A stretch of DNA of 64,000 nucleotides from Azolla caroliniana (Eukaryota; Plantae; Polypodiophyta), in contig JBHGNT010000003.1 in the NCBI GenBank assembly GCA_043228905.1, forward strand, positions 20,460,001 through 20,524,000, in the 5' to 3' direction. A program made the translations under genes and the position numbers. Shown in pieces: positions 400 to 51,960 of the stretch. A model generated the notes under the pieces. It was not told the DNA's origin. It was given only the letters and a program-made list of their open reading frames with translations, and ran no database searches. Numbering within the stretch: the first letter of the stretch is position 1; each line of letters starts with the position of its first letter.

Positions 400-1894
400 A
401 ACTTTTATACACGTGCCTCAGTGCTTTGGTGTTGAACCATTATTTATATCTCCCCTTCAATCAATCCAATGGGTTAACTCATTGTGTGAGTCTGAGTCAG
501 CTTGTGTTGGAGTCCTCCCTTACAGATTGCCAAGTCTCACTCAGCCATCTACAAGACATGCTAATCCTAAGGAGCATTTTCAAAGTCAGATGTGACATCA
601 TCTCTCTTCAATCAGATCTGGCTTTCATTCTATTGAGCCATGAAAAGCCAAAACTTATTGAGTCTCCAGCTCCCAATGAACTCATCAAAGTAGGGCCAAA
701 AACTTGCATTCATAATCAATGGACTCTTCTCGAAATTGACTCATAGGCTGTAGATGTCCCTGCTTTGGGCTTGTTTTAATAATTGACTCATAGGCTGTAG
801 ATGTCCTTGCTTCAGGCTTGTTTTAGAAATTGGCTAGCTGGCTATTGTAACAACTAACTCCTGCGAGCGTAAATTCTCTAGTACTCATACACCAACCATG
901 TGTATGAAGAGAAGGATCCCAAAGCAATCAAGCCTAGGTTGTTTATCATATGTTGATACCTACATTGTTGCTTTCAAGGTGCTCCCCTTGTGAGCATTCA
1001 GAAGTATGGGTTTTTCAGAAAAAAGAGAACTGTGTCTGAGTTTTCATCACTGTGACAACTCCTATTAAATTGCAACCCAATTCCTATCAGCCTCAAACAC
1101 ACTAATGTGACAAGCTATATTTAAAGAGAAATTCCCTAGATGAGGAAATTACAATCTTCTAGCATAGACAAATGTATAATTGACCATTATAGTGTTTACA
1201 ATATTGACATTTTTAAAATGTTACGGGACTTGGTACAGGCAACCTCAATTTGACTCACTGACCACAGAAGATCAAATCATCTATGAAGCATCATGATCCT
1301 CTCAGATAAAAATATAGACCTTTTGAGTCTTATACCAATTCCTCTACATCAATCACAGCACTCCTTGTGTGACAAACTTGTGAGAGCAGAATTCTGTTGA
1401 TGAGAAAATTAAAATATTCTAATGAACACAGATATGGACAGTTAATGTATATGCAACATTGAACATTCAAATGTTGGCAGTTCAGTAAAACTGGTTGAAT
1501 CTTGATTTGGATCTCAATGATCATAAAGGACATATAATGCATGAAGATCCTCTAAACATAGAGAGTGATGGAGAGTATAGATCTACTGCATCTCAACACA
1601 ATTCAAACATACAGAGAGAGAGAGAGAGAGAGTATACATTGATTGAATCTTCTCGATTCCTAGCCTCCAAACATTACGTGAGTGTAGTCACAGTGTTTAT
1701 CAACAATTAACATATTTGCAAGATCGAAAAATTCTACCATTCTTAGATTGGTGATCACATATTATCTAAAAGGCATGAAAATCATCAAATTGAGTAAGGA
1801 AGAGGGAAAGACTATAAAATTACAGAGAAATAGCAAAATAAACAATAGTGGTGAAGAGAGAGAGGGGGGGGAGAAAAAGGTATAGAACTCATAC

Positions 1895-2097
1895 TGAGGA
1901 TTGTCCATGTCCACCCCACTAACAATGCTATAGCCCGTCTTCTGGTTCATGAAAGGAGCAGTGGCAAGTTCAATGACGGGTCCTGATGAAGAAGGCATAA
2001 CTGATGATGATAATGATGGTGGATCAGATGAGAGTCGAACTTGGCGTAATGCATCTCTATACTTTCTGAAAACTGCAGTTCGATTCCTAGACGCCAT
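1895..2097 (-). CDS. SYP4: Syntaxin SYP4-family (SYP41/42/43, Tlg2/STX16-like) Qa-SNARE, first coding exon; remainder lies left of the window
   Basis: N-terminus MASRNRTAVFRKYRDALRQVR...GPVIELAT matches the plant SYP41-43 N-peptide; GT donor at 1894-1893 (CCTCA|GTATGAG); I found no next exon within 1-1890. Confidence 0.85.
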
Positions 2098-3579
2098 TCT
2101 TTTCTTAGAGCAAAAGAATCTCTTTATTTATTTGAAATTGAGCAACGATCAAGGACCTGATTTATCTTCCTTGTTTGAGCATAAAAAATAACAGTAACCC
2201 TAATCCTAACCCTATTTCTGCTTCAGCATCAGTTCCTTTATTGTTATAAAAAAACCAACCCTTTTCCTTTCTTGTTATTAAAATACTAGCTCTAATTCTT
2301 CTTCAGGATCAATTCCTGAGATCAATTCAAAAAACCAAATCCGAACTCTAACCAAGCTCTGCCTCGGTAACAATTGCCTAAAATCCACCCAAAATCCTAA
2401 CCCTCAGTCTGCTTCAGCATGAGTCCTGCGATCGATCCGAAACCCTAACCCTACTTCTACCTCAGAATCTATTCCTATGATCGAGCTTTAATTCCTTTGC
2501 GGATCTGATTGTTTTTTTCTGCTTCAGCAACACTAGTCCAGAACCTCTTACCCTATTTCTGCTTCTGTTTCTGCGTCTACGTAAAAAATTAGAGTCTTAA
2601 TTTCGCTCCATGAGATCCAAACCGATCACTAAACTTAATCCTGCTCCTTCATTTATTTCTGAGATCGATCCCCCCCAAAACAAAGGAAAAGAAGAAGAAG
2701 AAAAAACTAAAACTAACCCTAATTCTGCAGCGGCATCAATCGCCTGAGATCCGGCTATGGTGCCAGATCTCGTATTAAAGTCTGTCGAGAAGCAGGGGAC
2801 TTGGGGGGAGGGACTGGCTTTGGAGCTTATGTGTTCCATTTGTCCGGTTTCACACTGGCCAGGACAAATTCATCCCGCCTAGGGAGGGCTTCTCCTGACA
2901 AAACAAAAATTTACTCTCACGATTCGACCCGACAAACGGTCGTGGGTATTCATCCGAGAATGATGACGATTTCCGGATGTACAGTGAGAGCCGAGTGAGG
3001 TTTTCGTCTTTGCTCCCTCGCAGAGCTTTTTCTTCCCCGTGAAGAAAAACCCAAAGGATTATGAAATTTTGCATGCCATAGTTGTTGTTTTTACCCTGAT
3101 TGTAGTTTAGTGTTTGGGATTTCTGAGAAAAGGAACCATATGGTTCTATGTTTAACACACGGATAATAATAACTGGCTATGTTGGAGAGGTTCATGTTTC
3201 TGGTCAAGTTCACATGACCATGATTGAAGTTTTTTGAACTACAAACTAGCAAGTGGATTCCCATCAAACTTGCGGACTAGTCACGAAGAAGCCAACATTA
3301 ATCCTACCGCTTGATGTGAAAAAAGTTTCATCCCACGAGGAAACTATCGAGGCATCATGAAGTGAATGTAATGTACCCCATCTTCCAAGCCATCTCTTCA
3401 ACATTTGAACTTTTTTACTTGCTTCACTTGCAATTCTATGGGGTCAATGTGGGGGTTAAATTCTAATCCCAATCATGTACTCGACATCCCTCTATCTTCG
3501 TGATCTCAATGGTAAATTATGTGGCTTGCATGAGTACAACCATGCATATATTATGTTTGTATCTTGCTGAGAGAGAGAG

Positions 3580-3626
<47 letters not shown>

Positions 3627-3639
3627 TTTGTTTATGTAT

Positions 3640-3870
3640 GTATAGATTATTGTCCATTCTTCCAATCATAAACACTCTCATATGAACTTTGATTTGGAAA
3701 AAAACTATAGACAAATTTGAAGTTTGTAATGACAACAAAGACATACGTAAATGTGTAGATTATTGTCAATTGTTCCATCTTCCGATCATAAACGCTCTCA
3801 TATGAATTTTGATTTGGAAAAAAAAAGTTAGAATTGAAGTTTGCAATGGCAACACATACATACTTAAAAA
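3640..3870. repeat. Diverged tandem duplication (~115-120-bp unit) next to a (GA)n(GT)n microsatellite
   Basis: tagattattgtc...ctctcatatgaa.tttgatttggaaaaaaa...gaagtttg.aatg.caaca repeated. Confidence 0.7.
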
Positions 3871-5117
3871 CTAACTTTACAAGTTGTTGTGATAATTGAC
3901 ATGAGTTCATTGTCTTCATACAATATACAACTATCAATATAGTTCGTTGTTTCTTTGTGGTATCCACTTTTCAAACTATTGTGATAGTCATGACAAGTTC
4001 TTCATCTCCATTGGTGTCATGGTCGATAAGAGAGTTTTGAAGAAAATGTAGATGTATCATGTTAAAGGAACGAGTAACAAACTAAGTTGATAATGCCCAG
4101 TGAGTTGAAGGGGAACACTCAAAATAAATTAGAAACTTTTATGAAGAGTGATGCTTCTAATATTGAAAAGTGACTAGTAATTGAATATAGAGCTAAAAAT
4201 AAGAAAGTCAAAGTTATAAAGTTGTTGAGAAGTGTTTTTACCCTAATTTTTATGTAAGTGGTGGTGCAAGTGTCCTAATTTTTATGTAGCAATATTCGAG
4301 AGAATCATTTCATAAAATGAAACAGGCACAAAGAGTTCGATCTTGACCACCAAGTGATCACCTGCAATAATAGGAAAATCACCTTCGTGGGGGTGCTTGT
4401 CACCTTGACATTGACATTGACCGCAAACTTGACAACAACAAAACCTAATGAAAGGTCAAAAAATATATTTAAAGTTTATTGTCGACTTCTTTCGATTAAA
4501 ATTACGATTCTACAAGTGAAGCCAATTATACAAAGATTAATGTGTGAGACCTAAAGGACCATATGCACGAATTGTAACATAAAGCAACTACGAGTTGGTT
4601 GCAAAGTAATGGAGCATACTTCATGAAACTTCATGAACCATGCCTTGAAGGACGTTTTAGCTATAAAAACTTTATGCTATGATGGATGTGAGGAAAATAA
4701 ATATTGTAGACTTGGAGTACAATTGAGGTATTGTATGTTTATTTACATGAAGAATATTGTTGTTCTTGGTTCATTTTATGGTGGGGCAAAATAGTGTGGA
4801 CAAAGAATGCAAATGCTAGGTTGAATGATTTAATTAAAAGATTGTCAAAGCAAACAAACAAAAGGATAAATTTGTCAAACCTTCTTGCCTTTTTCAATAA
4901 CAAGTCATGTTGTCCTACACACACAATCAATGAAGTTCCAAAACATTTTGATGCAAGAGTGCTCAATCTTGGTTGAGGTGGAACCGAAGTTTTCATCCAC
5001 ATGTTTTGTTATATGACAAATCATAGAGTAGTCAAGCAAATTAATAATAGCCCCAAATGTAAGAGCATGATCAATATTGACAAATTACAATACATGATAT
5101 AGAAATCTTGTAAATAA

Positions 5118-5678
5118 TGTGAGGATCGTGACCAGCCACAACCGGTTACTCGTACATATATTTGGGTGCAAAGAATCGACAATGACAATGCACAGACAGA
5201 GAACAAAAAATACTAGAAAAAGAGAACACAGAGACACCAGATGTTTAACGTGGAAAACCCGAAAGGGAAAAACCACATGGAGTTCACAAACTCCAAAACA
5301 GAATCACTATGAGGGAGGAGTACAACGAGAAGCTCGAGGCAACAACCTCAAGCTCTCCTTCATCTGAAAGACGACTGTAGAGTTGCTCACTCGTTAACTC
5401 ACACACACACTCCCTCTCTCTTACTCTCAGTTGCTGAGACAACTACATTGTAACTATACAAGAATAATGATTCACTGTAACTACCAAAAAAGTTGCCCTA
5501 GTTGTATTTATACATATACAACTTTCTGGCTATTTACATACATAGCCCACAAGGGGCACATTTAGACTATTTACATATATAGTCTCCCGTTTTTTATTTC
5601 GACCAAGGTCGAAATACTTATTGACTCCATCCAATTTGGTTCATTCTCTTCCCATCCAGAGGGACATGTTTCCCAACA
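5118..5678 (-). mobile_element. Solo LTR (561 bp), copia-type
   Basis: TG...CA termini; perfect 5-bp TSD AATAA (5113-5117, 5679-5683); minus-strand start tgttgggaaacatgtccctctggatggga resembles the LTR start at 6212. Confidence 0.85.
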
Positions 5679-6582
5679 AATAAGACCATTACAAAATGAT
5701 TTTCAAACATAAGAGACAATGTTGGTATGGTGCCAATTGAATTGTGGCTCTTTTGACAGTCAAAGCTTCAAATGTGGTAACTTTGGCCCCTTTTGTGGCA
5801 AAATGCCAATGCAGACTAGTAGTTGAGGTCCTTAATACTCCTCCAAATGATATTACATTGCCAAATAATGTAGTTCAAAAAAGACTACATTAGAAAAATA
5901 ACTATGAATTAATATTATGGCAAGGTGAAACATGTATTGGTTAAAAGGAGAAAAATGTAATCAAGGAATGAATACCTACCTTTGAGCCTCGAGGGAAACC
6001 TACTCATTTGCCAAACCTTCAAAATAGTTTCAACATGAGGATATCACGTGTTGCACTGAGGTAAGTGGAGGATTTTATATTGTCATGCTCCTTGTAGTGA
6101 GGGATACGTTGGAACTCGTGGTGATCTCAAAATAGGCATTTAGAAATTATTGATGTTCAAATTCATCAAGTATGATGCATGAAGTTGAGTAATGGAACAC
6201 GTTCTAGTTATTGTTAGGTATTGTGTCCCTCTTGATGGGAGAAGTCGATGACCAAATTCTGGTCGGTCGGTTGATTTGGGGGTCGACTAGTCGGATTGAC
6301 CAGATGGTTGACCTATATATATGTATGTATGTATGTTTGTATATGTTTATTGGTCAACCGACTGGTTGGTTTGACCATCTGACCCATAGGTCAACCATTT
6401 GAAACCAGATCTGAAAGTGAGCACGCAAGCAATATAGAGTTGAGATAGTGTGAACTGTGTGAGAGACAACATGTAGAGACATAGTGAAGGAAGTGTCGAG
6501 ATAGCGTGAGTGAAGAAGACGAAGTGAAGATAGAGTAGTAGCGAGAATGTTGAGTGTTTAACAGAAATTGTGTGAGCAAGAC

Positions 6583-6641
<59 letters not shown>

Positions 6642-7001
6642 GGCAGACATTGTTTTGTGGAACTTGCCCAAACAATAGAAGTGATATTAGACAACAATTT
6701 GTGGTACCATATACCTGCGCAGGCTCTGTCGTCCTATGCACCATTGTTCTATTGTTAGCTTTGTCTCCTCTCTAGTGTTTGATATAATATTTCTTTGAGT
6801 TTTTCCCTTAGCAAGCTAGGGAGTCTTGTAATCTTGAGTTCTATATTGTTGACTAATAGTGGAAATTTTACTGCTTCGTGGTTTTCCTTGGTTTTAGGGT
6901 TTCCACGTAAATCGTGTGTATCTGATTTGTGTCTTAGATTAATTTTATGATTATGTTTAATTGTAAACATAACAAATTCGTATCACAACATTAGGTTCTA
7001 G

Positions 7002-9978
7002 ATGGAAGGAAGTGTGACTGGTTTTCCAGGAATGATACTCCTAAACTCTCACAACTATTCTGACTCGACGATCAAGATGGAGGATCTTCTGATAGTTAGG
7101 GATTTATATGAGCCCATAGATAGGAAGGATATACCAACGGAGGTAAATAGAATATGAGTGGAAAACCCTAAATAGAATGGTTGTGGAAACCATCAAACAA
7201 TGTGTAGACGTGAACATCCTTCAACATGTAGCAAACAATACAAATGCCCACGACTTGTGGCATAAGCTCTCTAACTTGTATGAAAGGAAAAAGGCTCTTA
7301 ATAAAGCTTCCTTGATGAGAAAGTTGGTGAGGCTAAAGTACACAAATGGTGATAGCGTTGTGGTGCACATCAGTACTTTCATGAGGTTAGTAAACCAGTT
7401 AGCATAATTGAAGTTCCCATTAGATGATGCGATGCAAGCCTTGTTACTATTGTGTACCCTACTGGACAGTTGGGAGAACCTAGTAGTGTCACTTAGTGCT
7501 TCTTGCCAAGAAGAGAACTTGTCTTTACAAGTAGTAAAGACAAGCATTTTGAACGAAGAGACAAGAAGAAAAGGTCAGAGTGTCTTGTCTCAATCGGAAG
7601 CAAATGTGGCAAAAAACATTGGTAGAGGAAGAAGTAAACATAGGAGGAGTCTACAAAATCGAGACAAGTCTCATGCCAGGTCAAAGTCTAGAGGAAGACT
7701 CACATGTTGCTATTGTGGGAAAACTGGTCATTTCCAAAAGAATTGTCGACGCCTTAAGAAGGACAAAGGCATTGTTGATGATGTTGAACCCAAAAAAAAT
7801 TATGATGAGAAAAACACCTCAGCCATCACAGCCAGTGAGGAGGAACTACTATTCATTTCCAAACAAGCTAGGGTCAATCTTGTAAATGATGAGTGCTCTT
7901 GGGTAGTTGATTCTGGCGCATCGTTTCACCTAACTGTGACAAGAGAATGTTTCTCATCTTACTCATTTGGTGACTATGGCTATGTAAAGATGGGAAATGA
8001 TGGAGCATGCGAGATAGTTGGTATTGGAAGTGTGTGCTTGCTAACATCAATTGGTTGTAGCCTTGTAGGTTAATATTGAAGGATGTGCGACATGTGTCGG
8101 ATGTCACACTGAACCTAATATCAACCAGAAGACTTGACAACGAAGGCTATAGTGGTAGTTTTTAGAATGGTATTTGGAAGGTTTTCAAGAGAATTTTGAT
8201 AGTGGCCCGAGCACAAAAATTGGGTACATTATATGTAATGCATGCAAAGTTGTGTAGATATGAGGCCAATGTGGTAGCTGACTCAGATGGTGAGTTATGG
8301 CATAAAAAGCTTGGCCACAACAGGGTTGCTTTTCACTCTAGGCTACTGAAAAGAAGAGAATGTGCACTAGAGTTGGTCCACACAGATGTATGCTTCATAG
8401 ATGCTCAATCACATAGGGGTGGACAATATTTTGTGACATTTATTGATGACTATAGCAGAAAGTTGTGGGCTTTCGTGCTGAAGTCTAAAGACCATGTGTT
8501 GTTAGTCTTTAAAGCGTTTCATGCAAGGGCTGAAAGAGAATCTGGACAGAAGTTGAAAGATGTCCAAACAGATAACGATGGTGAGTCTAAAGGACAATTT
8601 TAGTTGTACCATAAGACTCACGACATAAAACTTGAGTATACATTGTCGAAGACTCGCGAGTTGAATGGTCTCGTAGAGAGGATGAATCAAACTATAATGG
8701 AAAGGGTAAGAAGCATGTTGTCACATGAAAAACTTCTAAGATCGTATTGGGCTGAGGCTATGTTGACAAACGGTTTATCTTATAAACAGGTGGACAGGTA
8801 GAATGTGTCTTACCAGCACTTGAGGGTTTTTAGATGCTTGGTGTATATGCATGTTACAAAGGACCAGAGTTCAAAGATGGACAACAAGTCTAAATTGTGC
8901 ATATTTCTGGGGCTGACATACAACAACCAATCGATGAGGTTGAGTTTGAGTCGGTCGTCTCACATCAACATGCTGATGCACATTAATCTGAACTGGATGA
9001 AGAATCAACAAACACAATTGGACATGATCCGGTTGTTGGAGGAAGAAGATACTCACTTAGACAAAGGAAAACATCCTCTCGGTACCCAACTAGCCAATAT
9101 GTCATATTGACCGATGAGTATAAACTCGAATGCTATGAAGAAACTATGGCAGATGAATACAAGGAGAAGTGGTATAGTGCCATGCAAGATGAGATGGACT
9201 CCTTGCACGAAAATTACACCTACGATCTAGTGGAGCTACCGAATGGAAAGCAAGCTCTAAGAAACAAGTGGCTTTTCAAACTGAAGATTGGAGAAGATGG
9301 CAACTCACCTAGATATAAGGCATGAATTGTGGTGAAGGGATTTCAACATAAAAAAGGTGTTGATTTTGATGAAATATTTGCACCAGTCGTAAAAATGACA
9401 TCCATCCGGACTATATTGAGTATAATTGCCAGCTGCTAGTATGAATCTGGAAATAGAACAGTTGGATGTAAAAACAACATTCTTGCATGGGGATTTAGAA
9501 GAAGAAATTTATATGAAGAAACCAAAGGGTTTTGTGATGAAAGGAAAAGAGAAACTGGTATGTAGACTAAGAAATAGAACAATTGGATGTAAAAACAACA
9601 TTCTTGCATGGGGATTTAGAAGAAGAAATTTATATGAAGAAACCAAAGGGTTTTGTGATGAAAGGAAAAGAGAAACTGGTATGTAGACTAAGAAAGAGCT
9701 TGTATGGTCTGAAACAAGCTCCACCTTCATGTTGGAACATGGATTCCATAAAACACAAGCTAATCATTGTGTTTTTGTCAAGAGGTATGGTGAAGGTGAT
9801 TTTCTGATTCTCTTACTTTATGTATATGACATGTTGGTTGTCAAACAAGATGCTAAAAAGATTACGAGCCTAAAGAAAGCTCCAAGTAAATCGTTTTCTA
9901 TGAAGGATTTAGGTCCAGCTAAACAAATATTGGGGATGCACATAGTTCAGGACAGGACTAAAAATATGATATGGTTGT
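7002..9978 (+). pseudogene. gag-pol of outer copia, 5' part (stops and frameshifts)
   Basis: ORF fragments 7177-7407, 7408-8073, 8196-8603, 8604-8801, 9107-9325, 9426-9998 carry copia motifs in different frames. Confidence 0.9.
9451..9693 (+). repeat. 121-bp near-perfect tandem duplication inside the outer copia RT
   Basis: aaatagaaca.ttggatgtaaaaacaacattc...gtagactaagaa twice; shifts the frame. Confidence 0.9.
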
Positions 9979-10161
9979 TGTCGAATACAAGTGTATAATG
10001 GACGTATTCACACTATCCTTTTGTATAGCTCAAGTTTGGGCCATTTGTGTAATTAGCATAAAGGGTAGTTGCCCTAAGTTTGTCACTATATAAAGTGACC
10101 TTGTAACCTTTTTGTAAGGTTGGTTGTATTATTGTTTCTATTGAATAGAAAGTCTTTTGTG

Positions 10162-10208
<47 letters not shown>

Positions 10209-10297
10209 ACGATCTTGGAAACTGCCATATGCAGGTACTCAACTCGAATCGAATGCTATTTGATCTTCCGCATCGACACGGCCTTGTCTTCAACATT

Positions 10298-10309
10298 TGG
10301 TATCAGAGC
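10298..10309 (+). promoter_or_regulatory. Primer-binding site (initiator tRNA-Met) of copia copy 1
   Basis: TGGTATCAGAGC 2 nt after the LTR end. Confidence 0.95.
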
Positions 10310-10992
10310 CTGCACAGTATTCGGTTCCTCAACCTGCTGTCGGCCGTCGTCTCAGCCTGCACAGCATTCGGTTTCCTGCGTCATTCGAAGAAGAGAGAAG
10401 AAGAAGAAAAACGAGGCTTGCATCTCATCGCGTTAGATCATCTTCGCTTGGAGTAAGCCAGCCGGTTGTACTCTGTTTCTTGTGATCGTAACCGCTCGAG
10501 GTGAAATCCCCTTGTGCAACATTGACACGATCGTGCTCCACTCGGTTAAACGGCATCCGAAGAGGTCATCAAACGCTGCTCGCCGCTCATTGTAACCGCT
10601 CGGTGCAGATCGTTCTCAAGACAACAACCCCAATTCGTGCTTCATCCGGCTGATCGACATTCGGGAGGATCAGTTGGATCCGTCTCTCTCGTCGCTGCAG
10701 TCACCCGAAGCAGAATCGGTCCAGACAATCGGTTTCAATAATCGGTATTTGGCATATATATTCGGAAGCGAACCGGGCTCACTCCGACTCGGCAACATTC
10801 GGGAAGACCAGTCGGTTCTGTCCCTCAAGTTACCGGAGTCAATTCGAGCAAGTTCAACAATACATATATCCGAAGCCGAACCGACTCGGGTTCAAATCCG
10901 ACTAGAACGATATCGGGTGAGCCAACCGGCTGCACTCCAACAAGGTTCGTAGTCAACTCCGAACCGAGCTTCGTCAACCGAAACCAAATTTG

Positions 10993-11592
10993 ATGGCATC
11001 AACATCTGGCTCGTCAGAAATGAGTCTACGAAAGTTCGATGGATCGAACTTCAACTTCTGGAAGGAGCAAATGCAGGACTATCTCATAGTCAAGGGGCAA
11101 ATCGATCCCATCGAAAATGAAGAACCTCCAGAAGGATACAAACCAATTGAGTGGCAGAAGCTGGACAGAATCGTCCGCGCCACGATTCGGATGCACCTAT
11201 CGGAATCGGTATACTTTACGGTGCAATCGTGTACGACAACATTCGAACTGTGGAAAACACTGTCGGACACCTACGAAAAGAAGGTCGCTGCAACGAAGAT
11301 GTTTCTAATCCGGCACCTCTACAACTTGCGAATGAAAGAATCAGATTCGGTTCAAGCACATCTCAATGAGTACGAAAGCATAAGCTCCCAAATCTCATCT
11401 CAGGGGACGGCAATCGAGGATGAACTCAGAGCAATGATACTCATGAGCAGCCTTCCCTCATCATGGGAAACTTTCGTCACAACTGTGTGCAACGCGTCAA
11501 CCACGGCTGTTAAATACTCCGAAGTCGCGAGCGCAATCCTGACCGAAGCAGCTCGGAGAAAGTCTTTCGCCATTTTTTTTAAGATTGCTTAA
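10993..11592 (+). pseudogene. Truncated gag of copia copy 1 (runs into the PLE tail after ...RRKSFA)
   Basis: Near-identical to the N-terminus of the 1343-aa ORF at 46859-50890 up to 11572, then reads IFFKIA* from the insert. Confidence 0.95.
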
Positions 11593-12480
11593 AGTGTGCG
11601 GCACTTCATCGAGGGTTGTTTGGGGTGGACTCAAGTTTAGATCTTATTTGTATGTCTAAACATAAGTAGTGATATAGTTTTAGAAGAATAGAAAAGTGAG
11701 GGCGTGGGTGGGGGTTAGGGGAGTGTAGCTTGTTGAAATTATCAAAAGTATTTAAACCTAATCAAAGTTTTTAGAATATATTAAAGATCATTGGGATAAC
11801 TTAAGTTATTAGACAACAATAACGTACTATTAAAACACCAATATAGAGTATTATTAAAACGGAACCACACGCTTAGATGAACGAGAGTTGTTTAAACACA
11901 CGCTTAAGCAAACACTTAAAAGAAAGATTATTATAAAAAATAAGAATAAAAATAAAAATAGAAAAGAGAGATTGAGATTAAAAAATGATTATGGTTAAGA
12001 AGGGATTATGATTAAGGGGGAAGGGGTTGCTAAACAAAGTACTTAAACGAATGTTTAAACAAATATTTAGATAAGAAAACACTTGGGCAGACACTTAACG
12101 CAAGGTTAGGATTAAAAGAGAAGGGAGGGATTATGGTTAAAGAAAAGGGGTCATGGTTGAGAAGAGAATGATTATGATTAAGAGAGGAGAGTACTTAAAC
12201 AAATGTTTAAACAAAAAGTTAAACCTAAAAATGATTGAACAAGTACTTAAAAAAAAGGGGTTAAACAAGTACGTAATAAAAATGTTTATTAAACAAGTAC
12301 TTAATAGAAAATGATTAAATAAATGCTTAAAAACTTAAGACAAAAAAAAAATTTGATAAAAAAGTGATTAAACAAGTACTTAATAAAAATTTATTAAATA
12401 AGTACTTAAGAACTTAAGACAAAAAATTAGATAAGAGCAACACATAGAAGGAAAGAAAGTTTTACTATCATAAGGCAACG

Positions 12481-12526
12481 ATCGGCAAATGCATTTCGCC
12501 TCGATGGAGGCTCTTCAGTGCCCGAT
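12481..12526 (-). ncRNA. Minimal type I hammerhead ribozyme
   Basis: Minus strand AUCGGGCA-CUGAAGA-GCCUC(CAUC)GAGGC-GAAA-UGC-AUU/UGCCGAU: both conserved core boxes, 5-bp stem II, palindromic AUGCAU minimal stem III, stem I with one bulge; predicted cleavage between 12488 and 12487. Confidence 0.88.
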
Positions 12527-12688
12527 GTACAAATGATGAAAACTAAGCCTACTAGGTTGCTCTTTTTATAGGGAGAGGGAGGAGAGTCCTTTGTATGTGG
12601 GACATACAAAAGTGTGTACAAAGGGAAGGTAAAAGAGTGTACACAAGACTTTAGGTGGGGGTTAAGAGGGGTGAGAGTACATAAAACA

Positions 12689-14422
12689 TTAGGTGGGGGG
12701 AAAGGATGCGTGTACTAGGTGGTTTCTTAGTTTTTTACCATTTAGCCAACACGTGAGAGGGGGTGTAAGGGAACTGTATTGTGGTTGTCCTAGAAGGGGT
12801 TTAAGTTTGTTTCTCACGAGCGCTCCGATTTGGAGTTTTTTGATACAAGGGGAGTATCGAAGCTTTAAAACAATGGGTGGAGGTTTTTTGTTGTTGGGTT
12901 GGTTAGAGAGTAGTTGGTTTCGTATGGAGTAGGGGACGGTCGAAAAACACTTGAGTAGGAACTTCGATGGGTAGCCCCTAGCTCTTAGGCGGTCGTAGAA
13001 CTTTTTGCGTAGTTCCATGTAGCCATTTTCCGAGCTCTCCCGAATAGCATACCGTTTTAGTTCGCCCGTGATGAAGCCCTTTTTGTGTGCTATGGGGTGC
13101 GAGGATTTCCACGGGAGGTACATGTAGGCATTGAGAGGTTTTTGGTGGCATGTGGTGTCGAGGATGCCGAATTCTTTAAAGTATGGGCCTTTGAAGAAGA
13201 CGACGTCCAAGATGGTGATCTCTTTAGGGGAGGTTGTTGATTCAATACGGATGTGTTGTTGTAGAGGCACGCCGTATTGGTGTAAGAAGGTGTGAAGTGT
13301 ATCGGGGGAACCTTCCCAAACTCCTATGGCATCATCAATGTAGCGTTTGTAGTAGAGTAGTTGCGGTGTTTGGAAAGCTAGGTTGTCGTCCTCTAGCTGC
13401 GAAAGAAACAAGCAAGCGTAAACAACCGCAAAATTACTACCCATCGCGGTGCCTTTAATTTGTAACCAAAAAGCATTATTAAAGGAGAGAAAATTGTTTC
13501 TAAGTATTAGTTCGGCAACACTCATAATGATTTTGGTTTTGTGTGGTGGGAAATGATGTGAAATAGATTTTTTAAAAACCAATAGACCTTCCGTGGTAGG
13601 TATACTGGGATATAGTGACACTACGTCAAAAGAAAACAACGTGCAAGTTTTGGGGAAGGTGTGGTGTGCTAGGTCCTTAACAAGTGTTAAGGAGTCTTTG
13701 AGGTGTTGTTTTTTAGACAATAAGACAGGATGTAGTAGATGGTGTAGCCATTTAGAGGCTCTTTCGAAAACATAATTGTTGTAGGCGCAAATAGGGCGTC
13801 CTACAACAATGGGCTTGTGGATTTTGGGGATGATGTAGAAACGACATATCCTGAAACCATGTTTGGGTTTCTGAAGGAGGAATCTAATTTCCTCATTGGA
13901 GAGGTGGGGGGAAGCTTTCAGACATAGGTGTTCAAGTCGACTGTGGAGAGTTTCTAGGGGGACGTCTTTGACGGGGGTGTAAGTGTTTTTGTCGTTGAGC
14001 TGTCTAAGGCATTCGTTAAGGTACCAATCCTTAGAGAGAATGCACGTGCCTAGATTTTTATCCGCGGGTTTAATAACTATGTCTTGATTTTTTTTGAGAT
14101 TGTGTAGTGCAGTTCTAAAGTTCCTATGAGGGCGAGGTTGGATGGTGGGTGGGGAGGGGAGGGCAGAGGTGATAGATGTGATGGTTTGTGTGATTTCTGG
14201 CACGGCTGGGGGATTCCAACTGGGGTTCGGTATTCTAAATGGAGAGATAATGTTAGTAGAGTTTCTAAAGAAATATTTGAGGCGGTAAGTTCTATCCAAG
14301 GATACAACGGCATCTATCAATTGTTGTTTTCTAATAGGTTGGGGTGGGGGAATAAAGTCTAGACCTAAGCTTAGAAGTTTGAGTTGGGGTGGAGGAAGGT
14401 GGAAAGAGGAAAGGTTGTGCAA
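12689..14422 (-). CDS. Penelope-like reverse transcriptase (577 aa from a TTG; frame is stop-free up to 15028); no GIY-YIG domain
   Basis: PLE motifs LSLGLDFIP, IVIKPADKNLG, FYIIPKIHK..GRPI, FDVVSLYPSIP, QIKGTAMGS, RYIDD, KP.N...YLPWKSSHP, L.ARGYP, LRNHLVHA; stop immediately after the thumb region. Confidence 0.93.
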   Translation of the reverse strand: MHNLSSFHLPPPQLKLLSLGLDFIPPPQPIRKQQLIDAVVSLDRTYRLKYFFRNSTNIISPFRIPNPSWNPPAVPEITQTITSITSALPSPPTIQPRPHRNFRTALHNLKKNQDIVIKPADKNLGTCILSKDWYLNECLRQLNDKNTYTPVKDVPLETLHSRLEHLCLKASPHLSNEEIRFLLQKPKHGFRICRFYIIPKIHKPIVVGRPICAYNNYVFERASKWLHHLLHPVLLSKKQHLKDSLTLVKDLAHHTFPKTCTLFSFDVVSLYPSIPTTEGLLVFKKSISHHFPPHKTKIIMSVAELILRNNFLSFNNAFWLQIKGTAMGSNFAVVYACLFLSQLEDDNLAFQTPQLLYYKRYIDDAIGVWEGSPDTLHTFLHQYGVPLQQHIRIESTTSPKEITILDVVFFKGPYFKEFGILDTTCHQKPLNAYMYLPWKSSHPIAHKKGFITGELKRYAIRESSENGYMELRKKFYDRLRARGYPSKFLLKCFSTVPYSIRNQLLSNQPNNKKPPPIVLKLRYSPCIKKLQIGALVRNKLKPLLGQPQYSSLTPPLTCWLNGKKLRNHLVHASFPPT

Positions 14423-14490
14423 TGAGTGATTAGTGATCCTATTCTCGAGCTGGGAGGGTGTTTGCCTTCCCAGTAAAATGTGGAGGTAGG

Positions 14491-15138
14491 TTAACGGTTG
14501 AAGAAGCGGGAGCCAATGTAATTTTCTAAGTCTACCCCTACGTATTTTCTTGGTAGAGGATTTAGTTTCGGTCCCGTGGTGCGTGTGTTGGGTGCGCCTT
14601 GCGGGACTGGGGGCCGGGGATGAGGAGTAGGTCGTTTGACTGTGGGCCGGGGGTAAGGCGTGGGTCGTGAAATTGGGGGTCGAGGGACTGGGGGTTGAAG
14701 GACTGGGGGTCGAGGAACTGAGGGTCGAGGATAGGACCGTGTGGTGGGTTTGAAGGTCTCGAAGTGAGACATTGATTGTTTCATGGGTGGGGGTAGGGAG
14801 GTAGGTGGTGGTACATTCATCGGGACAAATATAGGGTACGTGGGGGGTATGGGATGTGTGGGTGGTACGGGATAAGCATAGCTTTGTCCATAACTTGGGA
14901 TAAAGGACTGGGTCCTTAAGAAGGAGGTGGGGGCAGTGGGGGATGAATTTGATAATTTGTGTGTCCTTGTGCCCCCGTTTTTTGTCGGGGGCATAGCCGT
15001 GTTTTTTGGATGTGTGTTGGGGTTTTCCTTATTAATTTTCTCTAGGAACGGTTTAAGGTAATTGTCTACTTGATTCTTGATCTTTTTTAGCCCATCATCT
15101 ATTAGAGTATTTATTGTTTTTTCTTTGCCCATCGTCAT
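14491..15138 (-). CDS. PLE ORF1: short amphipathic helical segment followed by a Pro/Arg-rich low-complexity region
   Basis: Stop-free frame 15146-14491; native ATGs at 15138 and 15132 (the ORF-track start at 15156 lies in junction filler DNA); PRPPVL/PRPPIS/PRPTVK repeats. Confidence 0.7.
   Translation of the reverse strand: MTMGKEKTINTLIDDGLKKIKNQVDNYLKPFLEKINKENPNTHPKNTAMPPTKNGGTRTHKLSNSSPTAPTSFLRTQSFIPSYGQSYAYPVPPTHPIPPTYPIFVPMNVPPPTSLPPPMKQSMSHFETFKPTTRSYPRPSVPRPPVLQPPVPRPPISRPTPYPRPTVKRPTPHPRPPVPQGAPNTRTTGPKLNPLPRKYVGVDLENYIGSRFFNR
14970..15007 (-). promoter_or_regulatory. Putative -1 programmed ribosomal frameshift signal (ORF1 to RT)
   Basis: A AAA AAC (15007-15001) in ORF1 frame, spacer ACGGCUA, hairpin UGCCCCCG-ACAAAAAA-CGGGGGCA (14993-14970); RT is the -1 frame and opens 21 nt upstream. 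Confidence 0.75.
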
Positions 15139-15160
15139 GGATTTCGAGGCCGGCATTACG

Positions 15161-17855
15161 CAGCAAGGCCGGCATTACGCATCTATCTAGAGCCGGATAC
15201 ATCCCTAAACTCTCCTTCTCCGACCATCAATTCTGCGAACATTGCCAGTATGGCAAACAAGCAGCCGCATCACACCCGACATCAGCACCAAGAGAAACGA
15301 GACCTCTCGATTTGGTCCACTCGGACGTCTGTGGCCCAATGCCGCATCAGTCTCTCGGCGGTGCCTCTTACTTCGTCAGTTTTATTGACGATTCGACTCG
15401 AAAGGTGTGGGCTTATCCAATTCGCACCAAAGATCGTGTCTTCTCGATCTTCTCCGATTGGCTCGCTATGGTAGAAAATCAAACCGACCGAAAACTGAAA
15501 TGCTTTCGGACCGACAATGGGGGAGAGTTCAAATCAGAAGAATTCGTCAAATTCTGCCGACAACGCGGCATCCGACGTGAATTTACGGCACCACACAGTC
15601 CGGAGCAAAACGGGATTGCAGAACGAATGAATCGGACAATCCAAGAACGGATAGTTTCCATGCTCCAACACTCCGGACTGTCGGATGGCTTCTGGGCAGA
15701 GGCTCTACTCACGGCAGTACACATAATCAATATGTCGCCAAGCAGACCTCTAGGACTTCAAATTCCTCAGGAACTATGGATCGGCAGTAAGCCGAATTAC
15801 GACAAGCTGAGGATCTTCGGATGCGAGGCGTACGCCCTTATTCCGAAAGATGATCGCCGAAAACTTGCACCTCGGTTCAGGAAATGCATTTTCCTTGGAT
15901 ATGGATCAGACGGCGAAATGGGATACCGACTCTGGGACCCCGAACGCAGACAAATCGTTCGAAGTTCGGACGTTGTGTTCAACGAGTCGGCTATGAATCC
16001 ATCAGTCAAAACACCGATCGAAGTCCGAAGGGTAACATTTTCCGATGTGCCGACCCTTCAAGAAGGCCCCGCTCTTAACACACGGTCAGCTTCACGGGTA
16101 GCTGAACCTTACACTACCGACTCGGACAACTCCGACTCGGCACAGCAGGATAATTCGCTTTCGGACCATCCGACCTCGATACCCGATACGACCAGTCCAA
16201 TCATACCTCGACGATCCGAGAGACTGTCGCAACCTCCGGAGAGGTATTCTCCTGGAATTTTCTTCACCGACGCCGGCGAACCGACGTCTTACGAAGAAGC
16301 ATCGACATCTGTCGATTCAGCCACCTGGCATCTGGCGATGGAGTCGGAAATGCACTCCATTCGGGCAAACAAGACTTGGGATCTGGTCGAATTACCTAAG
16401 AATCGACGTGCTCTTCCTTGCAAGTGGGTTTATCGACTAAAAGAGACGTCTGATTCGACCACCCCAAAGTACAAGGCCAGATTAGTTGCGAAGGGCTTCC
16501 GACAAGAATATGGCGTCGACTTCGACGAGATTTTTTCACCAGTGGTGAAAATGACAACCCTTCGTTTTCTACTCGGCGTAGTGGCAGCCGACAACTTGGA
16601 GCTGATTCAGCTAGATGTCAAAACAGCCTTCCTCCATGGTGATCTTGAAGAGGAAATTTATATGGAGCAGCCAAAAGGCTTCGTGGCAACTGGCCAAGAA
16701 CATCTAGTCTGCCGACTCAGGAAGAGTCTATACGGCCTCAAACAGGCACCGCGACAATGGTACAAGAAGTTCGACGACTTCATCCAATCGATCGGCTTCT
16801 CAAAAAGCGATGAGGACCATTGCCTTTTTACCAACACAGCTCAAGATGGATCACCCATCTTCCTCATCATTTACGTGGACGACATGCTAATTTCTGGACG
16901 CCACGCGGGCGAACTTGCCGATCTCATTCGGCAACTGCGGTTGAAGTTTGCCATGAAGGACCTCGGTCCGGCACGACACATACTCGGCATGAAGATTAGT
17001 CGGCATCGCGACAAACGACATCTTTTTTTGTCTCAGACCGACTATATCGGACGTGTCTTGGAACGCTTCAACATGCAATCAGCCAAATCTGCTTCAACCC
17101 CGCTCCCCATGAATCTTCGGCTCTCTCAGCGAGACTGCCCGACATCCGGTCCGGAGGGGGAAGATATGAAGTCGGTACCGTATGCACCGGCAGTCGGCTC
17201 CCTTATGTACCTGATGGTCGCGACACGGCCTGATATCTCTCATGCCGTAGGAGTCGTTAGCAGATTTATGCACAATCCTGGCCGATCGCATTGGAACGCA
17301 GTCAAGCATGTGTTCAAATATCTGGCTGGCACAAAAGACCACGGCATTCTTTTCGGACCGAACTCAACCTCAGGCGTAGTCGGTTACACCGACTCGGACT
17401 TCGCCGGCTGTATAGACAGTCGGAAATCAACAACCGGATACTGCTTCAAATTCGGCAATGGAGCAATTTCGTGGAAGTCGAAACTTCAGGAGTGCACAAC
17501 GACCTCAACGACCGAAGCAGAATATGTAGCTGCGTCCGACGCTGCAAAAGAAGCTTTGTGGCTCGGCCGGCTGGCGCACACGTTTCGGCAAGTCGACCAT
17601 GACTCGGCTCCAGTTGTCTATAGCGACAGTCAAGGTGCTGTTGCCTTGTCGAGAAATCCGGTTCACCACAACGCCTCCAAACATATCGACGTTCGATATC
17701 ACTTCGTTCGGGACTGCGTCATTTCAGGGAAAATCGGTCTAGAGAAAATATCCACAACCGACAATGTCGCAGATGGAATGACCAAGTGTCTTTCGGCAGA
17801 CCGCTTTCGGTCTCTTCGGCATCAGATGGGCGTAACGACAAACCAGTCCGGTTAG
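15161..17855 (+). CDS. Integrase-RT-RNase H of copia copy 1 (uninterrupted but decapitated)
   Basis: CEHCQYGK, LVHSDVCGP, RTDNGGEF, QNGIAER, YVDDML, ADGMTK; near-identical to copy 2. Confidence 0.92.
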
Positions 17856-18231
17856 AGCCGGACACAGCGCAGGATGGTTTCGGACAACCGACATCAGTTC
17901 CTTAATGATCGGCTTCAACTCTTCCGACCCGACCAGTCCGGTCTTCTGCCTTCGGACACTGCCGACTCGAACAAAACTGATATGTCCGAGAACCTAGGTT
18001 TATACCTGTAATCTTAGACAACCCATGTATACGCCCATTACGGGGGAGTGTCGAATACAAGTGTATAATGGACGTATTCACACTATCCTTTTGTATAGCT
18101 CAAGTTTGGGCCATTTGTGTAATTAGCATAAAGGGTAGTTGCCCTAAGTTTGTCACTATATAAAGTGACCTTGTAACCTTTTTGTAAGGTTGGTTGTATT
18201 ATTGTTTCTATTGAATAGAAAGTCTTTTGTG

Positions 18232-18298
<67 letters not shown>

Positions 18299-18390
18299 AC
18301 GATCTTGGAAACTGCCATATGCAGGTACTCAACTCGAATCGAATGCTATTTGATCTTCCGCATCGACACGGCCTTGTCTTCAACAGTTGT

Positions 18391-31321: not shown

Positions 31322-32523
31322 CTACAGCTTGGAGAAGCTAGGCTTCCTTTTCTGCATTGATGCATCCATGGCTTTCTTCAAGTCATTTGAGTCAAGCATG
31401 GCTGAGTTCCAAGTAGCAACATAGTCAAGTCCATCATGAATACTTAAATCCCGTGATTTAATTAGTACTTTCTTGATTCCAACAACAGTTAAAGGCGACT
31501 TGGATGCAATGTTTCCTGCGAGGGAAATCACGTATTCTTCCATGGCTTCTTTTGAGGTGAAGACATTGTTAACAAGACCTATACTCTTCGCCTCTATCGC
31601 TGAAACTTTGCGCCCTGTGAGAGCTAATTCCATGGTGTTTCCATAGCCAACAATGAAAGGCAACCTTTGAAGTGTTCCAAGGTCAGCAACTATGGCTAGG
31701 TCTACTTCCTTCACAGAAAAATATGCGTCCATGCTACAGTACCTGACGTCAACAAGCATATATAAAGAAGATAAAGGTCCCATTTCTAACTTTTTACTTT
31801 ACAAGAAATAATAGACCAGCTTGTTGAAGGGAATATTTTCCCTCATAAAACCATTGAGGTTTTCGTCAAGCCAAACAAGTTATGACCCCAGTTTTGACTT
31901 AAAAACAGGATATCTTCTTCAACAGAAAGGTCTAGTTTTTCTTCACCAATGAGGAACATTTAGTTTTCCCTTCGAGATTAGAAATAATTAGCATTTATTC
32001 AACATAGAGATTTAGTTTTTTCTGCAACACGATAATTAGGGTTTCTTTGACGGAAAGAAGAAATGATTCCATAAATATCTCACCTGAGGTCACAAGCAGC
32101 GATCAAATCAACACCAGCTCCAATACAAGCTCCATGAATGGCTGCAATCACAGGTTTTCTGCAAGACTCTATGGAAGAAAAAGATTCCTGCAAATTCTTA
32201 ATGAAACGCAGATTTTTCTCTCTATACGTCGCACCACCCCTAAGATCAACTTGATCTTTTCCTTTTTCTTTTTCTCCATAGCCAGGGTTTTGCTGGGAAA
32301 GGAGGAGGGACAGGTCGATTCCTGCGCAGAAGTTCTTACCCGAAGCACTGAGAATGATAACACGGACATCTGTGCAAGAGTCGAGGTAAGAGATGGCGAG
32401 AGGTAGTTCTGAGAAGAGGGATGGATCGAATGCGTTGGAGCGAAGGGGACGATGGAGAGATAGCTTGGCGACGCCTTGGTCTGGTCCTTCGAGCTTCAAG
32501 CTGCGCCATTGCTGCTGCTCCAT
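31322..32523 (-). CDS. DCI1: Peroxisomal delta(3,5)-delta(2,4)-dienoyl-CoA isomerase (crotonase family), 286 aa; exons 32523-32084 and 31742-31322
   Basis: GKNFCAGIDL, CRKPVIAAIHGACIGAGVDLIAACDLR|YC, KEVDLAIVADLGTLQRLP, GLDYVATWNSAML; C-terminal SKL (PTS1); GT-AG intron, phases match. Confidence 0.93.
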
Positions 32524-46361: not shown

Positions 46362-49300
46362 TGTTGAAGACAAGGCCGTCAATGCGGAAGATCAAGTAGC
46401 ATTCGATTGGGGTTGAGTACCTGCGTATGACAGTTTCTCAGATCGTGCACAGAGATAGAGAGAGAGAGAGAGAGAGGAGGCACAAAAGACTCTTTCTATT
46501 CAATAGAAACAATAATACAACCAACCTTACAAAAAGGTTACTAGGTCACTTTATATAGTGGCAAACTTAGGGCAACTACCATTTATGCTAATTGCACGAA
46601 TGGCCCAAACTTGAGCTATACAAAGGGATAGTGTGAATACGTCCATTATACACTTGTATTCGACACTCCCCCGTAATGGGCGTATACATGGGTTATCTAA
46701 GATTACAGGTATAAACCTAGGTTCTCGGACATATCAGTTTTGTTCGAGTCGGCAGGGTCCGAAGGCAGAAGGCCGGACTGGTCGGGTCGGAAGAGTTGAA
46801 GCCGATCATTAAGGAACTGATGTCGGTTGTCTGAAACCATCCTGCGCTGTGTCTGGCTCTAACCGGACTGGTTTGTCGTTACGCCCATCTGATGCCGAAG
46901 GGACCGAAAGCGGTCTGCCGAAAGACACTTGGTCATTCCATCTGCGACATTGTTGGTTGTGGATATTTTCTCTAGACCGATTTTCCCTGAAATGACGCAG
47001 TCCCGAACGAAGTGATATCGAACGTCGATATGTTTGGAGGCGTTGTGGTGAACCGGATTTTTCGACAAGGCAACAGCACCTTGACTGTCGCTATAAACAA
47101 CTGGGGCCGAGTCATGGTCGACTTGTCGAAACGTGTGCGCCAGCCGGCCGAGCCACAAAGCTTCTTTTGCAGCGTCGAACGCAGCTACATATTCTGCTTC
47201 GGTCGTTGAGGTCGCTGTGCACTCCTGAAGTTTCGACTTCCACGAAATTGCTCCATTGCCGAATTTGAAGCAGTATCCAGTTGTTGATTTCCGACTGTCT
47301 ATACAGCTGGCGAAGTCCGAGTCGGTGTAACCGACTACACCTGAGGTTGAGTTCGGACCGAAAAGAATGTCGTGGTCTTTTGTGCCAGCCAGATATTTGA
47401 ACACATGCTTGACTGCGTTCCAATGCGATCGGCCAGGATTGTGCATAAATCTGCTAACGACTCCTACGACATGAGAAATATCAGGCCGTGTCGCGACCAT
47501 CAGGTACATAAGGGAGCCGACTGCCGGTGCATACGGTACCGACTTCATATCTTCCCCCTCCGGACCGGATGTCGGGCAGTCTCGCTGAGAGAGCCGAAGA
47601 TTCATGGGGAGCGGGGTTGAAGCAGATTTGGCTGATTGCATGTTGAAGCGTTCCAAGACACGTCTGATATAGTCGGTCTGAGACAAAAAAAGATGTCGTT
47701 TATCGCGATGCCGACTAATCTTCATGCCAAGTATGTGTCGTGCCGGACCGAGGTCCTTCATGGCAAACTTCAACCGCAATTGCCGAATGAGATCGGCAAG
47801 TTCGCCCGCGTGGCGTCCAGAAATTAGCATGTCGTCCACGTAAATGATGAGGAAGATGGGTGATCCATCTTGAGCTGTGTTGGTAAAAAGACAATGGTCC
47901 TCATCGCTTTTTGAGAAGCCGATCGATTGGATGAAGTCGTCGAACTTCTTGTACCATTGTCGCGGTGCCTGTTTGAGGCCGTATAGACTCTTCCTGAGTC
48001 GGCAGACTAGATGTTCTTGGCCAGTTGCCACGAAGCCTTTTGGCTGCTCCATATAAATTTCCTCTTCAAGATCACCATGGAGGAAGGCTGTTTTGACATC
48101 TAGCTGAATCAGCTCCAAGTTGTCGGCTGCCACTACGTCGAGTAGAAAACGAAGGGTTGTCATTTTCACCACTGGTGAAAAAATCTCGTCGAAGTCGACG
48201 CCATATTCTTGTCGGAAGCCCTTCGCAACTAATCTGGCCTTGTACTTTGGGGTGGTCGAATCAGACGTCTCTTTTAGTCGGTAAACCCACTTGCAAGGAA
48301 GAGCACGTCGATTCTTAGGTAATTCGACCAGATCCCAAGTCTTGTTTGCCCGAATGGAGTGCATTTCCGACTCCATCGCCAGATGCCAGGTGGCTGAATC
48401 GACAGATGTCGATGCTTCTTCGTAAGACGTCGGTTCGCCGGCGTCGGTGAAGAAAATTCCAGGAGAATACCTCTCCGGAGGTTGCGACAGTCTCTCGGAT
48501 CGTCGAGGTATGATTGGACTGGTCGTATCGGGTATCGAGGTCGGATGGTCCGAAAGCGAATTATTCTGCTGTGCCGAGTCAGAGTTGTCCGAGTCGGTAG
48601 TGTAAGGTTCAGCTACCCGTGAAGCTGACCGTGTGTTAAGAGCGGGGCCTTCTTGAAGGGTCGGCACATCGGAAAATGTTACCCTTCGGACTTCGATCGG
48701 TGTTTCGACTGATGGATTCATAGCCGACTCGTTGAACACAACGTCCGAACTTCGAACGATTTGTCTGCGTTCGGGGTCCCAGAGTCGGTATCCCATTTCG
48801 CCGTCTGATCCATATCCAAGGAAAATGCATTTCCTGGACCGAGGTGCAAGTTTTCGGCGATCATCTTTCGGAATAAGGGCGTACGCCTCGCATCCGAAGA
48901 TCCTCAGCTTGTCGTAATTCGGCTTACTGCCGATCCATAGTTCCTGAGGAATTTGAAGTCCTAGAGGTCTGCTTGGCGACATATTGATTATGTGTACTGC
49001 CGTGAGTAGAGCCTCTGCCCAGAAGCCATCCGACAGTCCGGAGTGTTGGAGCATGGAAACTATCCGTTCTTGGATTGTCCGATTCATGCGTTCTGCAATC
49101 CCGTTTTGCTCCGGACTGTGTGGTGCCGTAAATTCACGTCGGATGCCGCGTTGTCGGCAGAATTTGACGAATTCTTCTGATTTGAACTCTCCCCCATTGT
49201 CGGTCCGAAAGCATTTCAGTTTTCGGTCAGTTTGATTTTCTACCATAGCGAGCCAATCGGAGAAGATCGAGAAGACACGATCTTTGGTGTGAATTGGATA

Positions 49301-51737: not shown

Positions 51738-51960
51738 CTACGAGCATTACTACTCATATTGCTAATGAGTTAAGGTTGGATACGATCAATAAGCATTCTT
51801 GCTTTATATAGAGACCAACATTCACGGTTGACATTTGCAATGTAGTATTCTAGCTTCGTCCTTTTAGCATCTTCCCACTTCATCCTTAACGATTCCACCA
51901 ACCTTTCCTCAATCGTTACATATTGCATAACATTGCCCGAAAGCTCTAAAAGATCATCCA

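Follow-up and report, generated by a model that had tools for sequence, protein, structure and literature searches.

Penelope-like elements (PLEs) without an endonuclease (EN) are viewed as near kin of telomerase among the retroelements and as largely confined to chromosome ends. The 64,000-nucleotide stretch of Azolla caroliniana contig JBHGNT010000003.1 analyzed here, hereafter the window, carries an EN-less PLE at an internal site, inside a young copia retrotransposon. The insert is a single 5'-truncated copy and is therefore not autonomous. It is probably a two-open-reading-frame (ORF) member of the plant Coprina-type lineage that was inserted by break-primed synthesis and end-joining. The route by which some EN-less PLEs reach internal sites was left open by Craig et al. 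2021 (PMC8557442). Here the pre-insertion sequence can be read to the base from a sister copia elsewhere in the window, and the locus is a clean natural example of this internal route. As a single case of a known kind, it is useful rather than surprising.

The insert, its host, and its relatives

The host copia lies on the plus strand and is interrupted by the insert. Its left part (9979-11572) contains the 5' long terminal repeat (LTR; 9979-10295), the primer-binding site (PBS), and gag up to sister residue 193. Its right part (15161-18385) resumes in pol from sister residue ~447 and ends with the 3' LTR (18049-18385). The element is flanked by a perfect 5-bp target-site duplication (TSD), GTTGT, at 9974-9978 and 18386-18390. 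The original prediction described the LTRs as identical, and indeed there are 0 substitutions between them; they differ only in the length of a (CT)n microsatellite (10163-10204 and 18253-18294), the difference being 10 CT units. The host copia keeps its LTRs, PBS, and polypurine tract (PPT) and has lost the protease.

The intact sister copia, which serves as the empty-site reference, is found at 46362-51739 on the minus strand and has an ORF at 46859-50890 encoding 1343 amino acids. The sister and host proteins are 96-98% identical. At the DNA level, the match between host copia and sister runs to 11572, breaks off, and resumes at 15161. What the host copia lacks is exactly 757 bp of the sister (reverse-complement index 1491-2247), covering the remainder of gag, the protease, and the pre-integrase region.

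The insert that separates the two parts spans 11573-15160 on the minus strand and not 11573-15146 as first given. It is composed of PLE-derived DNA at 11573-15148, which is 3,576 bp of a 5,272-bp unit, and a 12-nt filler at 15149-15160. This is the only PLE copy in the window (n=1). The length of the unit is known from close relatives. P0001, 99% identical to the reverse transcriptase (RT) encoded by ORF2 of the insert, is located on L001, a contig of 5,327 bp with a 55-bp overlap between its ends; the family unit is thus 5,272 bp, assembled as a circle or a tandem. Head-to-tail units are confirmed by L002 (90% identical) and L003. The window copy corresponds to L001 positions 2197-5327 followed by 1-524, and to unit positions 1671-5270, with 98.2% identity. 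The family therefore has the partial tandem (pseudo-LTR) organization, seen in L001, L002, L003, and the Cryptomeria contig L007, and the window copy is a single truncated unit. On L007 (Cryptomeria japonica), positions 1820-8487 hold two identical 626-amino acid EN-less PLE RT genes in a tandem of ~4.33 kb. As a side observation on the collection, P0121, a 40-amino acid hypothetical protein of Escherichia coli, is listed in the 90% cluster of P0001 and looks like a clustering artefact.

The 3' end of the family is canonical. In L001 and L003 the unit ends in ...CTTAAAAAA, followed by GC and the next tandem unit. In L002, CC comes after ...CTTAAAAAA, and beyond it lies the next unit or an unrelated flank. 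In the window, ...CTTAAAAAAAA stands directly against copia. Public contigs aligned to the window have loose ends at 11575, from which they run into the tandem junction or another flank. The window 3' end thus lies no more than 2 nt from the 3' ends that L002 and public contigs show independently, and the recurrence of the same terminus in L001-L003 and the public contigs identifies the A-run as the fixed 3' terminus of the family. The oligo(A) end claimed for the insert exists as a terminal A8 run (11573-11580, minus strand), and it is the canonical end of the element itself. Its interpretation as a long poly(A) tail is rejected; the run is A6 plus 2 variable bases in the relatives.

Junctions and proposed insertion mechanism

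Comparison of the host copia with sister copia DNA reveals no TSD at the edges of the PLE insert. The 5' junction was resolved by a three-way comparison of the host copia, the sister copia, and L001. The filler GCCGGCATTACG at 15149-15160 is a direct copy of copia 15168-15179, located 7 nt further in. At the 3' junction, copia ...TTTCGCCA abuts T8 with no microhomology. Together, the loss of 757 bp, the lack of a TSD, and the 12-nt templated filler point to an endonuclease-independent insertion at a double-strand break. All of the hallmarks of this type of insertion (no TSD, target deletion, no cleavage-site consensus, and junction filler) are present, at one locus only.

The proposed mechanism would begin with a double-strand break inside the recently integrated copia. 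Resection of the left end would present a free 3'-OH on the plus strand (...TTTCGCCA). The PLE RT would prime on that end without base-pairing, starting at the very 3' end of the RNA (...CUUAAAAAA), and would copy ~3.6 kb before halting inside ORF1. The end of the cDNA would then be joined to the other broken end, either by microhomology or templated end-joining or by an RT template jump, and this joining step would copy 12 nt from 7 nt inside the other end. These steps would form a single event, the outcome of which would be the loss of 757 bp of copia and no TSD.

The priming step has a competitor in the capture of a pre-made PLE cDNA that was primed elsewhere and ligated into the break by end-joining, so that the broken end was not the primer. 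In its favor, both junctions fit simple end-joining, the 3' junction lacks microhomology, and the T run is two longer than the A6 of the relatives. However, the insert starts within 2 nt of the fixed 3' terminus, as independent copies do, which is expected from target-primed synthesis. Moreover, a free cDNA would still need a primer, and a telomerase-related RT normally takes a DNA 3' end. Capture of a pre-made cDNA is judged quite unlikely.

The deletion and the truncation could also have a history of their own. A full-length PLE could have entered at 11572 and later suffered a deletion of ~2.4 kb (1,670 bp of the PLE 5' part and 757 bp of copia) that was sealed by the 12-nt templated filler. 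Filler and a lack of microhomology are typical of any end-joining deletion, and the 5' junction shows nothing specific to reverse transcription. This origin, however, calls for two rare events within the short time implied by LTRs without a single substitution. In addition, 5' truncation occurs in other copies of the family, such as the upstream copy on L003, which is truncated at unit position 4549. A two-step origin is unlikely on this evidence.

The age of the insertion depends on the order of events. That the PLE insertion is younger than the copia integration is likely, and it is assumed whenever the LTRs are used to date the PLE. The PLE could instead have entered an older copia, and intact members could have mobilized the resulting copia::PLE chimera in trans, in which case the identical LTRs would give the age of the chimera's move and not that of the PLE insertion. 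The host copia keeps its LTRs, PBS, PPT, and a perfect TSD, an intact sister copia is present in the window, and copia-matching contigs occur in all four public runs (4/4). Against a mobilized chimera, neither chimeric junction is on any contig from the four runs and four studies, from which rare variants are dropped, and the break-associated reading of the junctions would stay unchanged in any case. This order of events has a low probability. The claim of recent activity away from telomeres accordingly stands in part: the copia is young and the 64 kb hold no telomere repeat, and the dating assumes that the PLE entered after the copia had integrated.

An error of assembly was also weighed. A repeat misassembly could have spliced a PLE into copia, both partners are repeats, and no independent contig bridges the junctions. 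Misassembly, however, joins at shared sequence, and copia and the PLE share none. The canonical PLE terminus and the 12-nt templated duplication are biological signatures, making an artefact very improbable.

Several points weigh against break-primed insertion as the preferred reading. One locus cannot establish break-priming as the usual mode of the family. The 3' junction lacks microhomology, so priming there is read only from the canonical terminus, and the deletion and truncation could stem from a later, separate event. Over 5,001 nt aligned to contigs of four public runs from four studies, none bridges either junction, and the junctions, for which the original prediction had asked for confirmation, remain unconfirmed by independent data; public contigs drop rare variants, so the missing bridge is absent support and not a contradiction. 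Contigs at the junction sites show only intact-copia sequence or the tandem PLE junction. Finally, the name of the clade rests on the Selaginella relative and on shared features and not on a curated reference tree.

Absence of an endonuclease and the ORF1 remnant

The PLE has no endonuclease, either in the window copy or in the 5.27-kb full-length relatives. With a Pfam threshold as loose as E<=10, no GIY-YIG domain turns up in ORF2, full-length ORF1, or the ORF1 remnant. A tblastn search of the window and all loci with the endonuclease tail of P0219, a relative with a weak GIY-YIG match, gives chance matches only (E>2), and GIY-YIG is not listed on any of the ORF2 homologues. The absence of GIY-YIG claimed originally is therefore upheld. 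The C-terminus of ORF1 does contain a YVG..YIG string, but it is not taken for a remnant of GIY-YIG, since its elements are wrongly ordered and spaced, a stop codon comes 6 residues later, and relatives do not conserve it. The CxC motif is absent from ORF1 and ORF2 of L001 and the window and from P0012, the Selaginella relative. The longer copies on L001-L003, in which an N-terminal GIY-YIG was to be sought, do exist, and their 665-amino acid ORF1 has neither GIY-YIG nor CxC. The N-terminal GIY-YIG linked to RT that marks Naiad/Chlamys elements is not found, and the family is not of this type.

ORF1 is present as predicted, in part. The ORF listing gives a 221-codon frame at 14491-15156 upstream of the RT, whose ATG sits in the junction filler. 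Because the window copy begins at L001 position 2197, this frame is only the C-terminal third of ORF1. The PLE-derived part of the proline-rich remnant is located at 14491-15148 on the minus strand and comprises the C-terminal ~219 codons of 665-671. Full-length ORF1, with 665-671 codons, is at L001 869/887-2884. Its central helical domain is conserved in L004 (a 48% relative) and in Selaginella L006. ORF1 has three close homologues only; the Atlas look-alikes are helical bundles below useful scores, and a sequence search of the PDB with an ORF1 profile was blank. Near 14700, the remnant has a 30-bp in-frame deletion relative to L001 within the proline-rich repeat PVPRPPIS.

Reverse transcriptase

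ORF2 is located at 12689-14518 on the minus strand; from the conserved HWLPLL start through the stop codon it has 609 codons. The ORF listing gives a 577-codon frame at 12689-14422. The conserved N-terminus begins at 14518, there is no interruption, and the frame, which has no AUG, is open up to 15028. The motifs IKPADKN, PKIHK..GRPI, DVVSLY, GTAMGS, RYIDD, KP..YL..SSHP, and GYP are all found in ORF2. In a 42-sequence alignment, NRITN..HNLS, KPADKN, PKIHK..GRPI, DVVSLY, GTAMG, YIDD, and the thumb KP..Y..SSHP are invariant or nearly so. ORF2 thus has the features by which a PLE RT is recognized, namely the PLE-specific N-terminal motifs, DK(N/G), RT motifs 1-7, and the thumb, and the prediction of an uninterrupted RT with all PLE motifs was correct.

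A word-indexed homologue search with ORF2 returned 657 matches. The best homologues outside the family are 40-49% identical and come from Cryptomeria, Selaginella, Ginkgo, Closterium, and many other contigs. These homologues carry the precomputed domains DUF8422 and HTH_animal, which are likewise recorded on the 99%-identical P0001. In an exhaustive search, 16,711 cluster representatives reached E<=0.001. A local Pfam search of ORF2 and ORF1 matched no family, and a PDB sequence search with ORF2 found nothing. The AlphaFold (AF2) model of ORF2, built on the 42-sequence alignment, has a mean pLDDT of 92.8. Its best PDB structural matches are telomerase catalytic subunits with a TM-score of ~0.43, followed by LINE-1 ORF2p, G2L4, and R2.

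The RT lineage is under purifying selection. ORF2 differs from L001 at 13 positions, comprising 9 synonymous and 4 non-synonymous differences. With a quarter of random changes taken as synonymous, 9 of 13 has a probability of ~0.001 under neutrality. As neutral decay is unlikely to produce this ratio, most of the differences lie between active lineages, and few changes have accumulated in the copy after its insertion.

The arrangement of the two ORFs was also compared between lineages. In three divergent lineages, ORF2 is in the -1 frame relative to ORF1 and lacks an AUG (window 14491-14518; L004 5437-5690; L006 5425-5930). The conserved N-terminal (F/H)WLPL motif of ORF2 always starts at most ~25 nt from the ORF1 stop, and the relative P0002 has a Met exactly at the start of this motif. 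An AUG-less ORF2 in the -1 frame with its N-terminus near the ORF1 stop suggests coupled termination-reinitiation or a -1 frameshift. Inspection by eye near the ORF1 stop revealed no canonical slippery site of the form X XXY YYZ.

The 3' UTR and the hammerhead ribozyme

Downstream of ORF2 is a 3' untranslated region (UTR) of ~1.1 kb with degenerate internal repeats (11581-12688, minus strand). It is 98.4% identical to unit positions 4161-5270, and the ORF listing contains no ORF of at least 80 amino acids in it.

The 3' UTR contains a type I hammerhead ribozyme motif at 12526-12481 on the minus strand, in agreement with the claim that a hammerhead accompanies the element. The full catalytic core, CUGAAGA and GAAA, is read directly from the sequence. 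Helix I pairs 12526-12519 with 12487-12481 (7 bp, one bulge). Helix II has 4 bp, CCUC/GAGG. Helix III has 1 bp and is closed by the palindromic loop UGCA. Cleavage is predicted after U12488. A pairing-aware pattern scan of 128 kb, that is, both strands of the window, gave a single match at this site. The same pattern matches homologous places in L004, in Selaginella L006, and twice in the Cryptomeria tandem on L007, where the loops are CAUG or CCGG. Each RT gene on L007 is followed by this hammerhead ~425 bp downstream.

Compensatory changes are found in 8 of the 12 pairs across four lineages, and 87.5% of cells pair, versus 25-50% in slid controls; this count is partly circular, as the sequences were chosen by a pairing-aware pattern. 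Rfam gives no match of any kind at E<=1 over 9 kb. On 161 nt, Hammerhead_3 scores 15 bits, below the gathering score. Because the Rfam score is low, the hammerhead call rests on the core motif and on covariation in relatives. The same architecture is known from Selaginella PLEs and from dimer-dependent animal hammerheads (PMC4209133). Sequence from either side of the cleavage site is present in the window copy, which means that its template RNA was not cut there.

Phylogenetic placement and the link to telomeres

A maximum-likelihood tree of 48 RTs places the window RT in a clade of vascular plants that has 99% SH-aLRT support. Within this clade Selaginella branches first, followed by gymnosperm and plant-like sequences, and the nearest algal relatives are from Closterium. 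The Puccinia RT and the group with a weak GIY-YIG are in the other half of the tree. The PLE is provisionally assigned to the plant Coprina-type lineage, because its RT forms a clade with a Selaginella element and because relatives are flanked by CCCTAAA repeats. With regard to Athena, the multi-ORF telomeric EN-less PLEs of rotifers, rotifer clusters among the Atlas look-alikes are a lead only. The Selaginella elements Sm1 and Sm2 are classified as Coprina (PMC13159263), and canonical hammerheads have been described in Selaginella PLEs (PMC4209133). The suggestion that the family is undescribed consequently holds only at the level of its fern-like host, as its kind is the known plant Coprina-type lineage (PMC13159263, PMC4209133).

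Arrays of CCCTAAA on the sense strand lie beside the element in L004, L005, and Selaginella L006. The 5' UTR of the family itself contains two telomere C-strand units, AAACCCTAAACCCTAACC, at L001 756-773 and also at L003 989-1006. These units lie ~230 bp beyond the point where the preceding tandem unit has its canonical 3' end, and they may be a relic of telomere targeting. Telomere repeats are absent from the 64-kb window, including its PLE copy.

A broader proposal is offered tentatively and is doubtful at present: a Coprina-type lineage in a fern-like genome may largely have left the telomeres, with a two-unit telomere vestige as all that remains, spreading interstitially under purifying selection with resected double-strand-break tails as primers. 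If true, this would be a retrotransposon for which break patching is the normal route of integration, and it would explain the genome-wide distributions of EN-less PLEs.

Genomic surroundings

The surrounding region consists of nested transposons. The host copia is itself nested in an older, decayed copia, found at 7408-9998 of the window and beyond 18390, with Pol_BBD, SH3_retrovirus, and RVT_2 fragments. The older copia has a 121-bp tandem duplication at 9450-9691. Among window ORFs of at least 150 amino acids, a single one resembles part of a host gene, namely an exon of an enoyl-CoA hydratase at 31322-31783 on the minus strand; it corresponds to the C-terminal half of an enoyl-CoA hydratase/isomerase (ECH_1, E 3.5e-20). 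The earlier description of the region as gene-rich thus finds no support. A GC-rich stretch at 56-58 kb contains an ORF with a zf-RVT domain (57087-57815, plus strand), which is probably a LINE fragment.

Comparison with known systems

The closest known systems are the EN-less Coprina-type PLEs, such as Sm1 and Sm2 of Selaginella moellendorffii (Gladyshev and Arkhipova 2007, as represented in PMC8557442, PMC4209133, and PMC13159263). In these accounts, they share with the present family the lack of GIY-YIG, the DKN motif, and a protein composed of RT and thumb only. Also common to both are head-to-tail partial tandems and a canonical type I hammerhead whose helix III is 1 bp long and whose loop is palindromic. 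The Selaginella relative (41-42% identity) is the first to branch in the clade of the window RT, and relatives are flanked by sense CCCTAAA. In contrast, the window copy is interstitial, has no telomere repeats, and is associated with a 757-bp target deletion; in the 5' UTR of the family, only two telomere units are kept. The family has two ORFs in a -1 overlap, whereas a single ORF is the usual description for Coprina; Coprina-1_Alen likewise carries two (PMC13159263). The host here is a fern-like plant.

Craig et al. define a separate EN-less group, PLE-X, by its CxC motif (PMC8557442). The Chlamys PLE-X elements of Chara, Selaginella, and mosses (Craig et al. 2021, PMC8557442) resemble the present family in their green-lineage hosts, the lack of EN, and the canonical hammerhead. 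The EN-less families of Chara are spread genome-wide and have no known endonuclease (PMC8557442). Unlike PLE-X, the family described here lacks CxC and the N-terminal CxCX1-8C extension and does not target rDNA. Craig et al. point out that EN-less PLEs must find other sources of 3'-OH ends (PMC8557442).

Telomerase reverse transcriptase (TERT) provides the best structural matches of the ORF2 model, to the Tribolium, Candida, and human proteins. By analogy, the element and TERT would share the extension of a single-stranded DNA 3' end on an RNA template. They differ in that the similarity is distant (TM-score ~0.43, identity ~11%), the element has no TEN or TRBD domain, and it copies its own mRNA-like template once.

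Endonuclease-independent LINE-1 insertion (Morrish et al. 2002, 2007, as summarized in PMC4700185) is the nearest parallel to the junctions. According to that summary, the two share the lack of a TSD, a target deletion, the lack of an endonuclease site, and, here probably, insertion at a DNA lesion, and the same logic applies to the use of uncapped telomeres. LINE-1, however, belongs to another RT class, and endonuclease-independent LINE-1 copies are described there as often 3'-truncated, whereas the 3' end is complete here. As the PLE is wholly without an endonuclease, the use of breaks could be its normal mode and not a by-pass.

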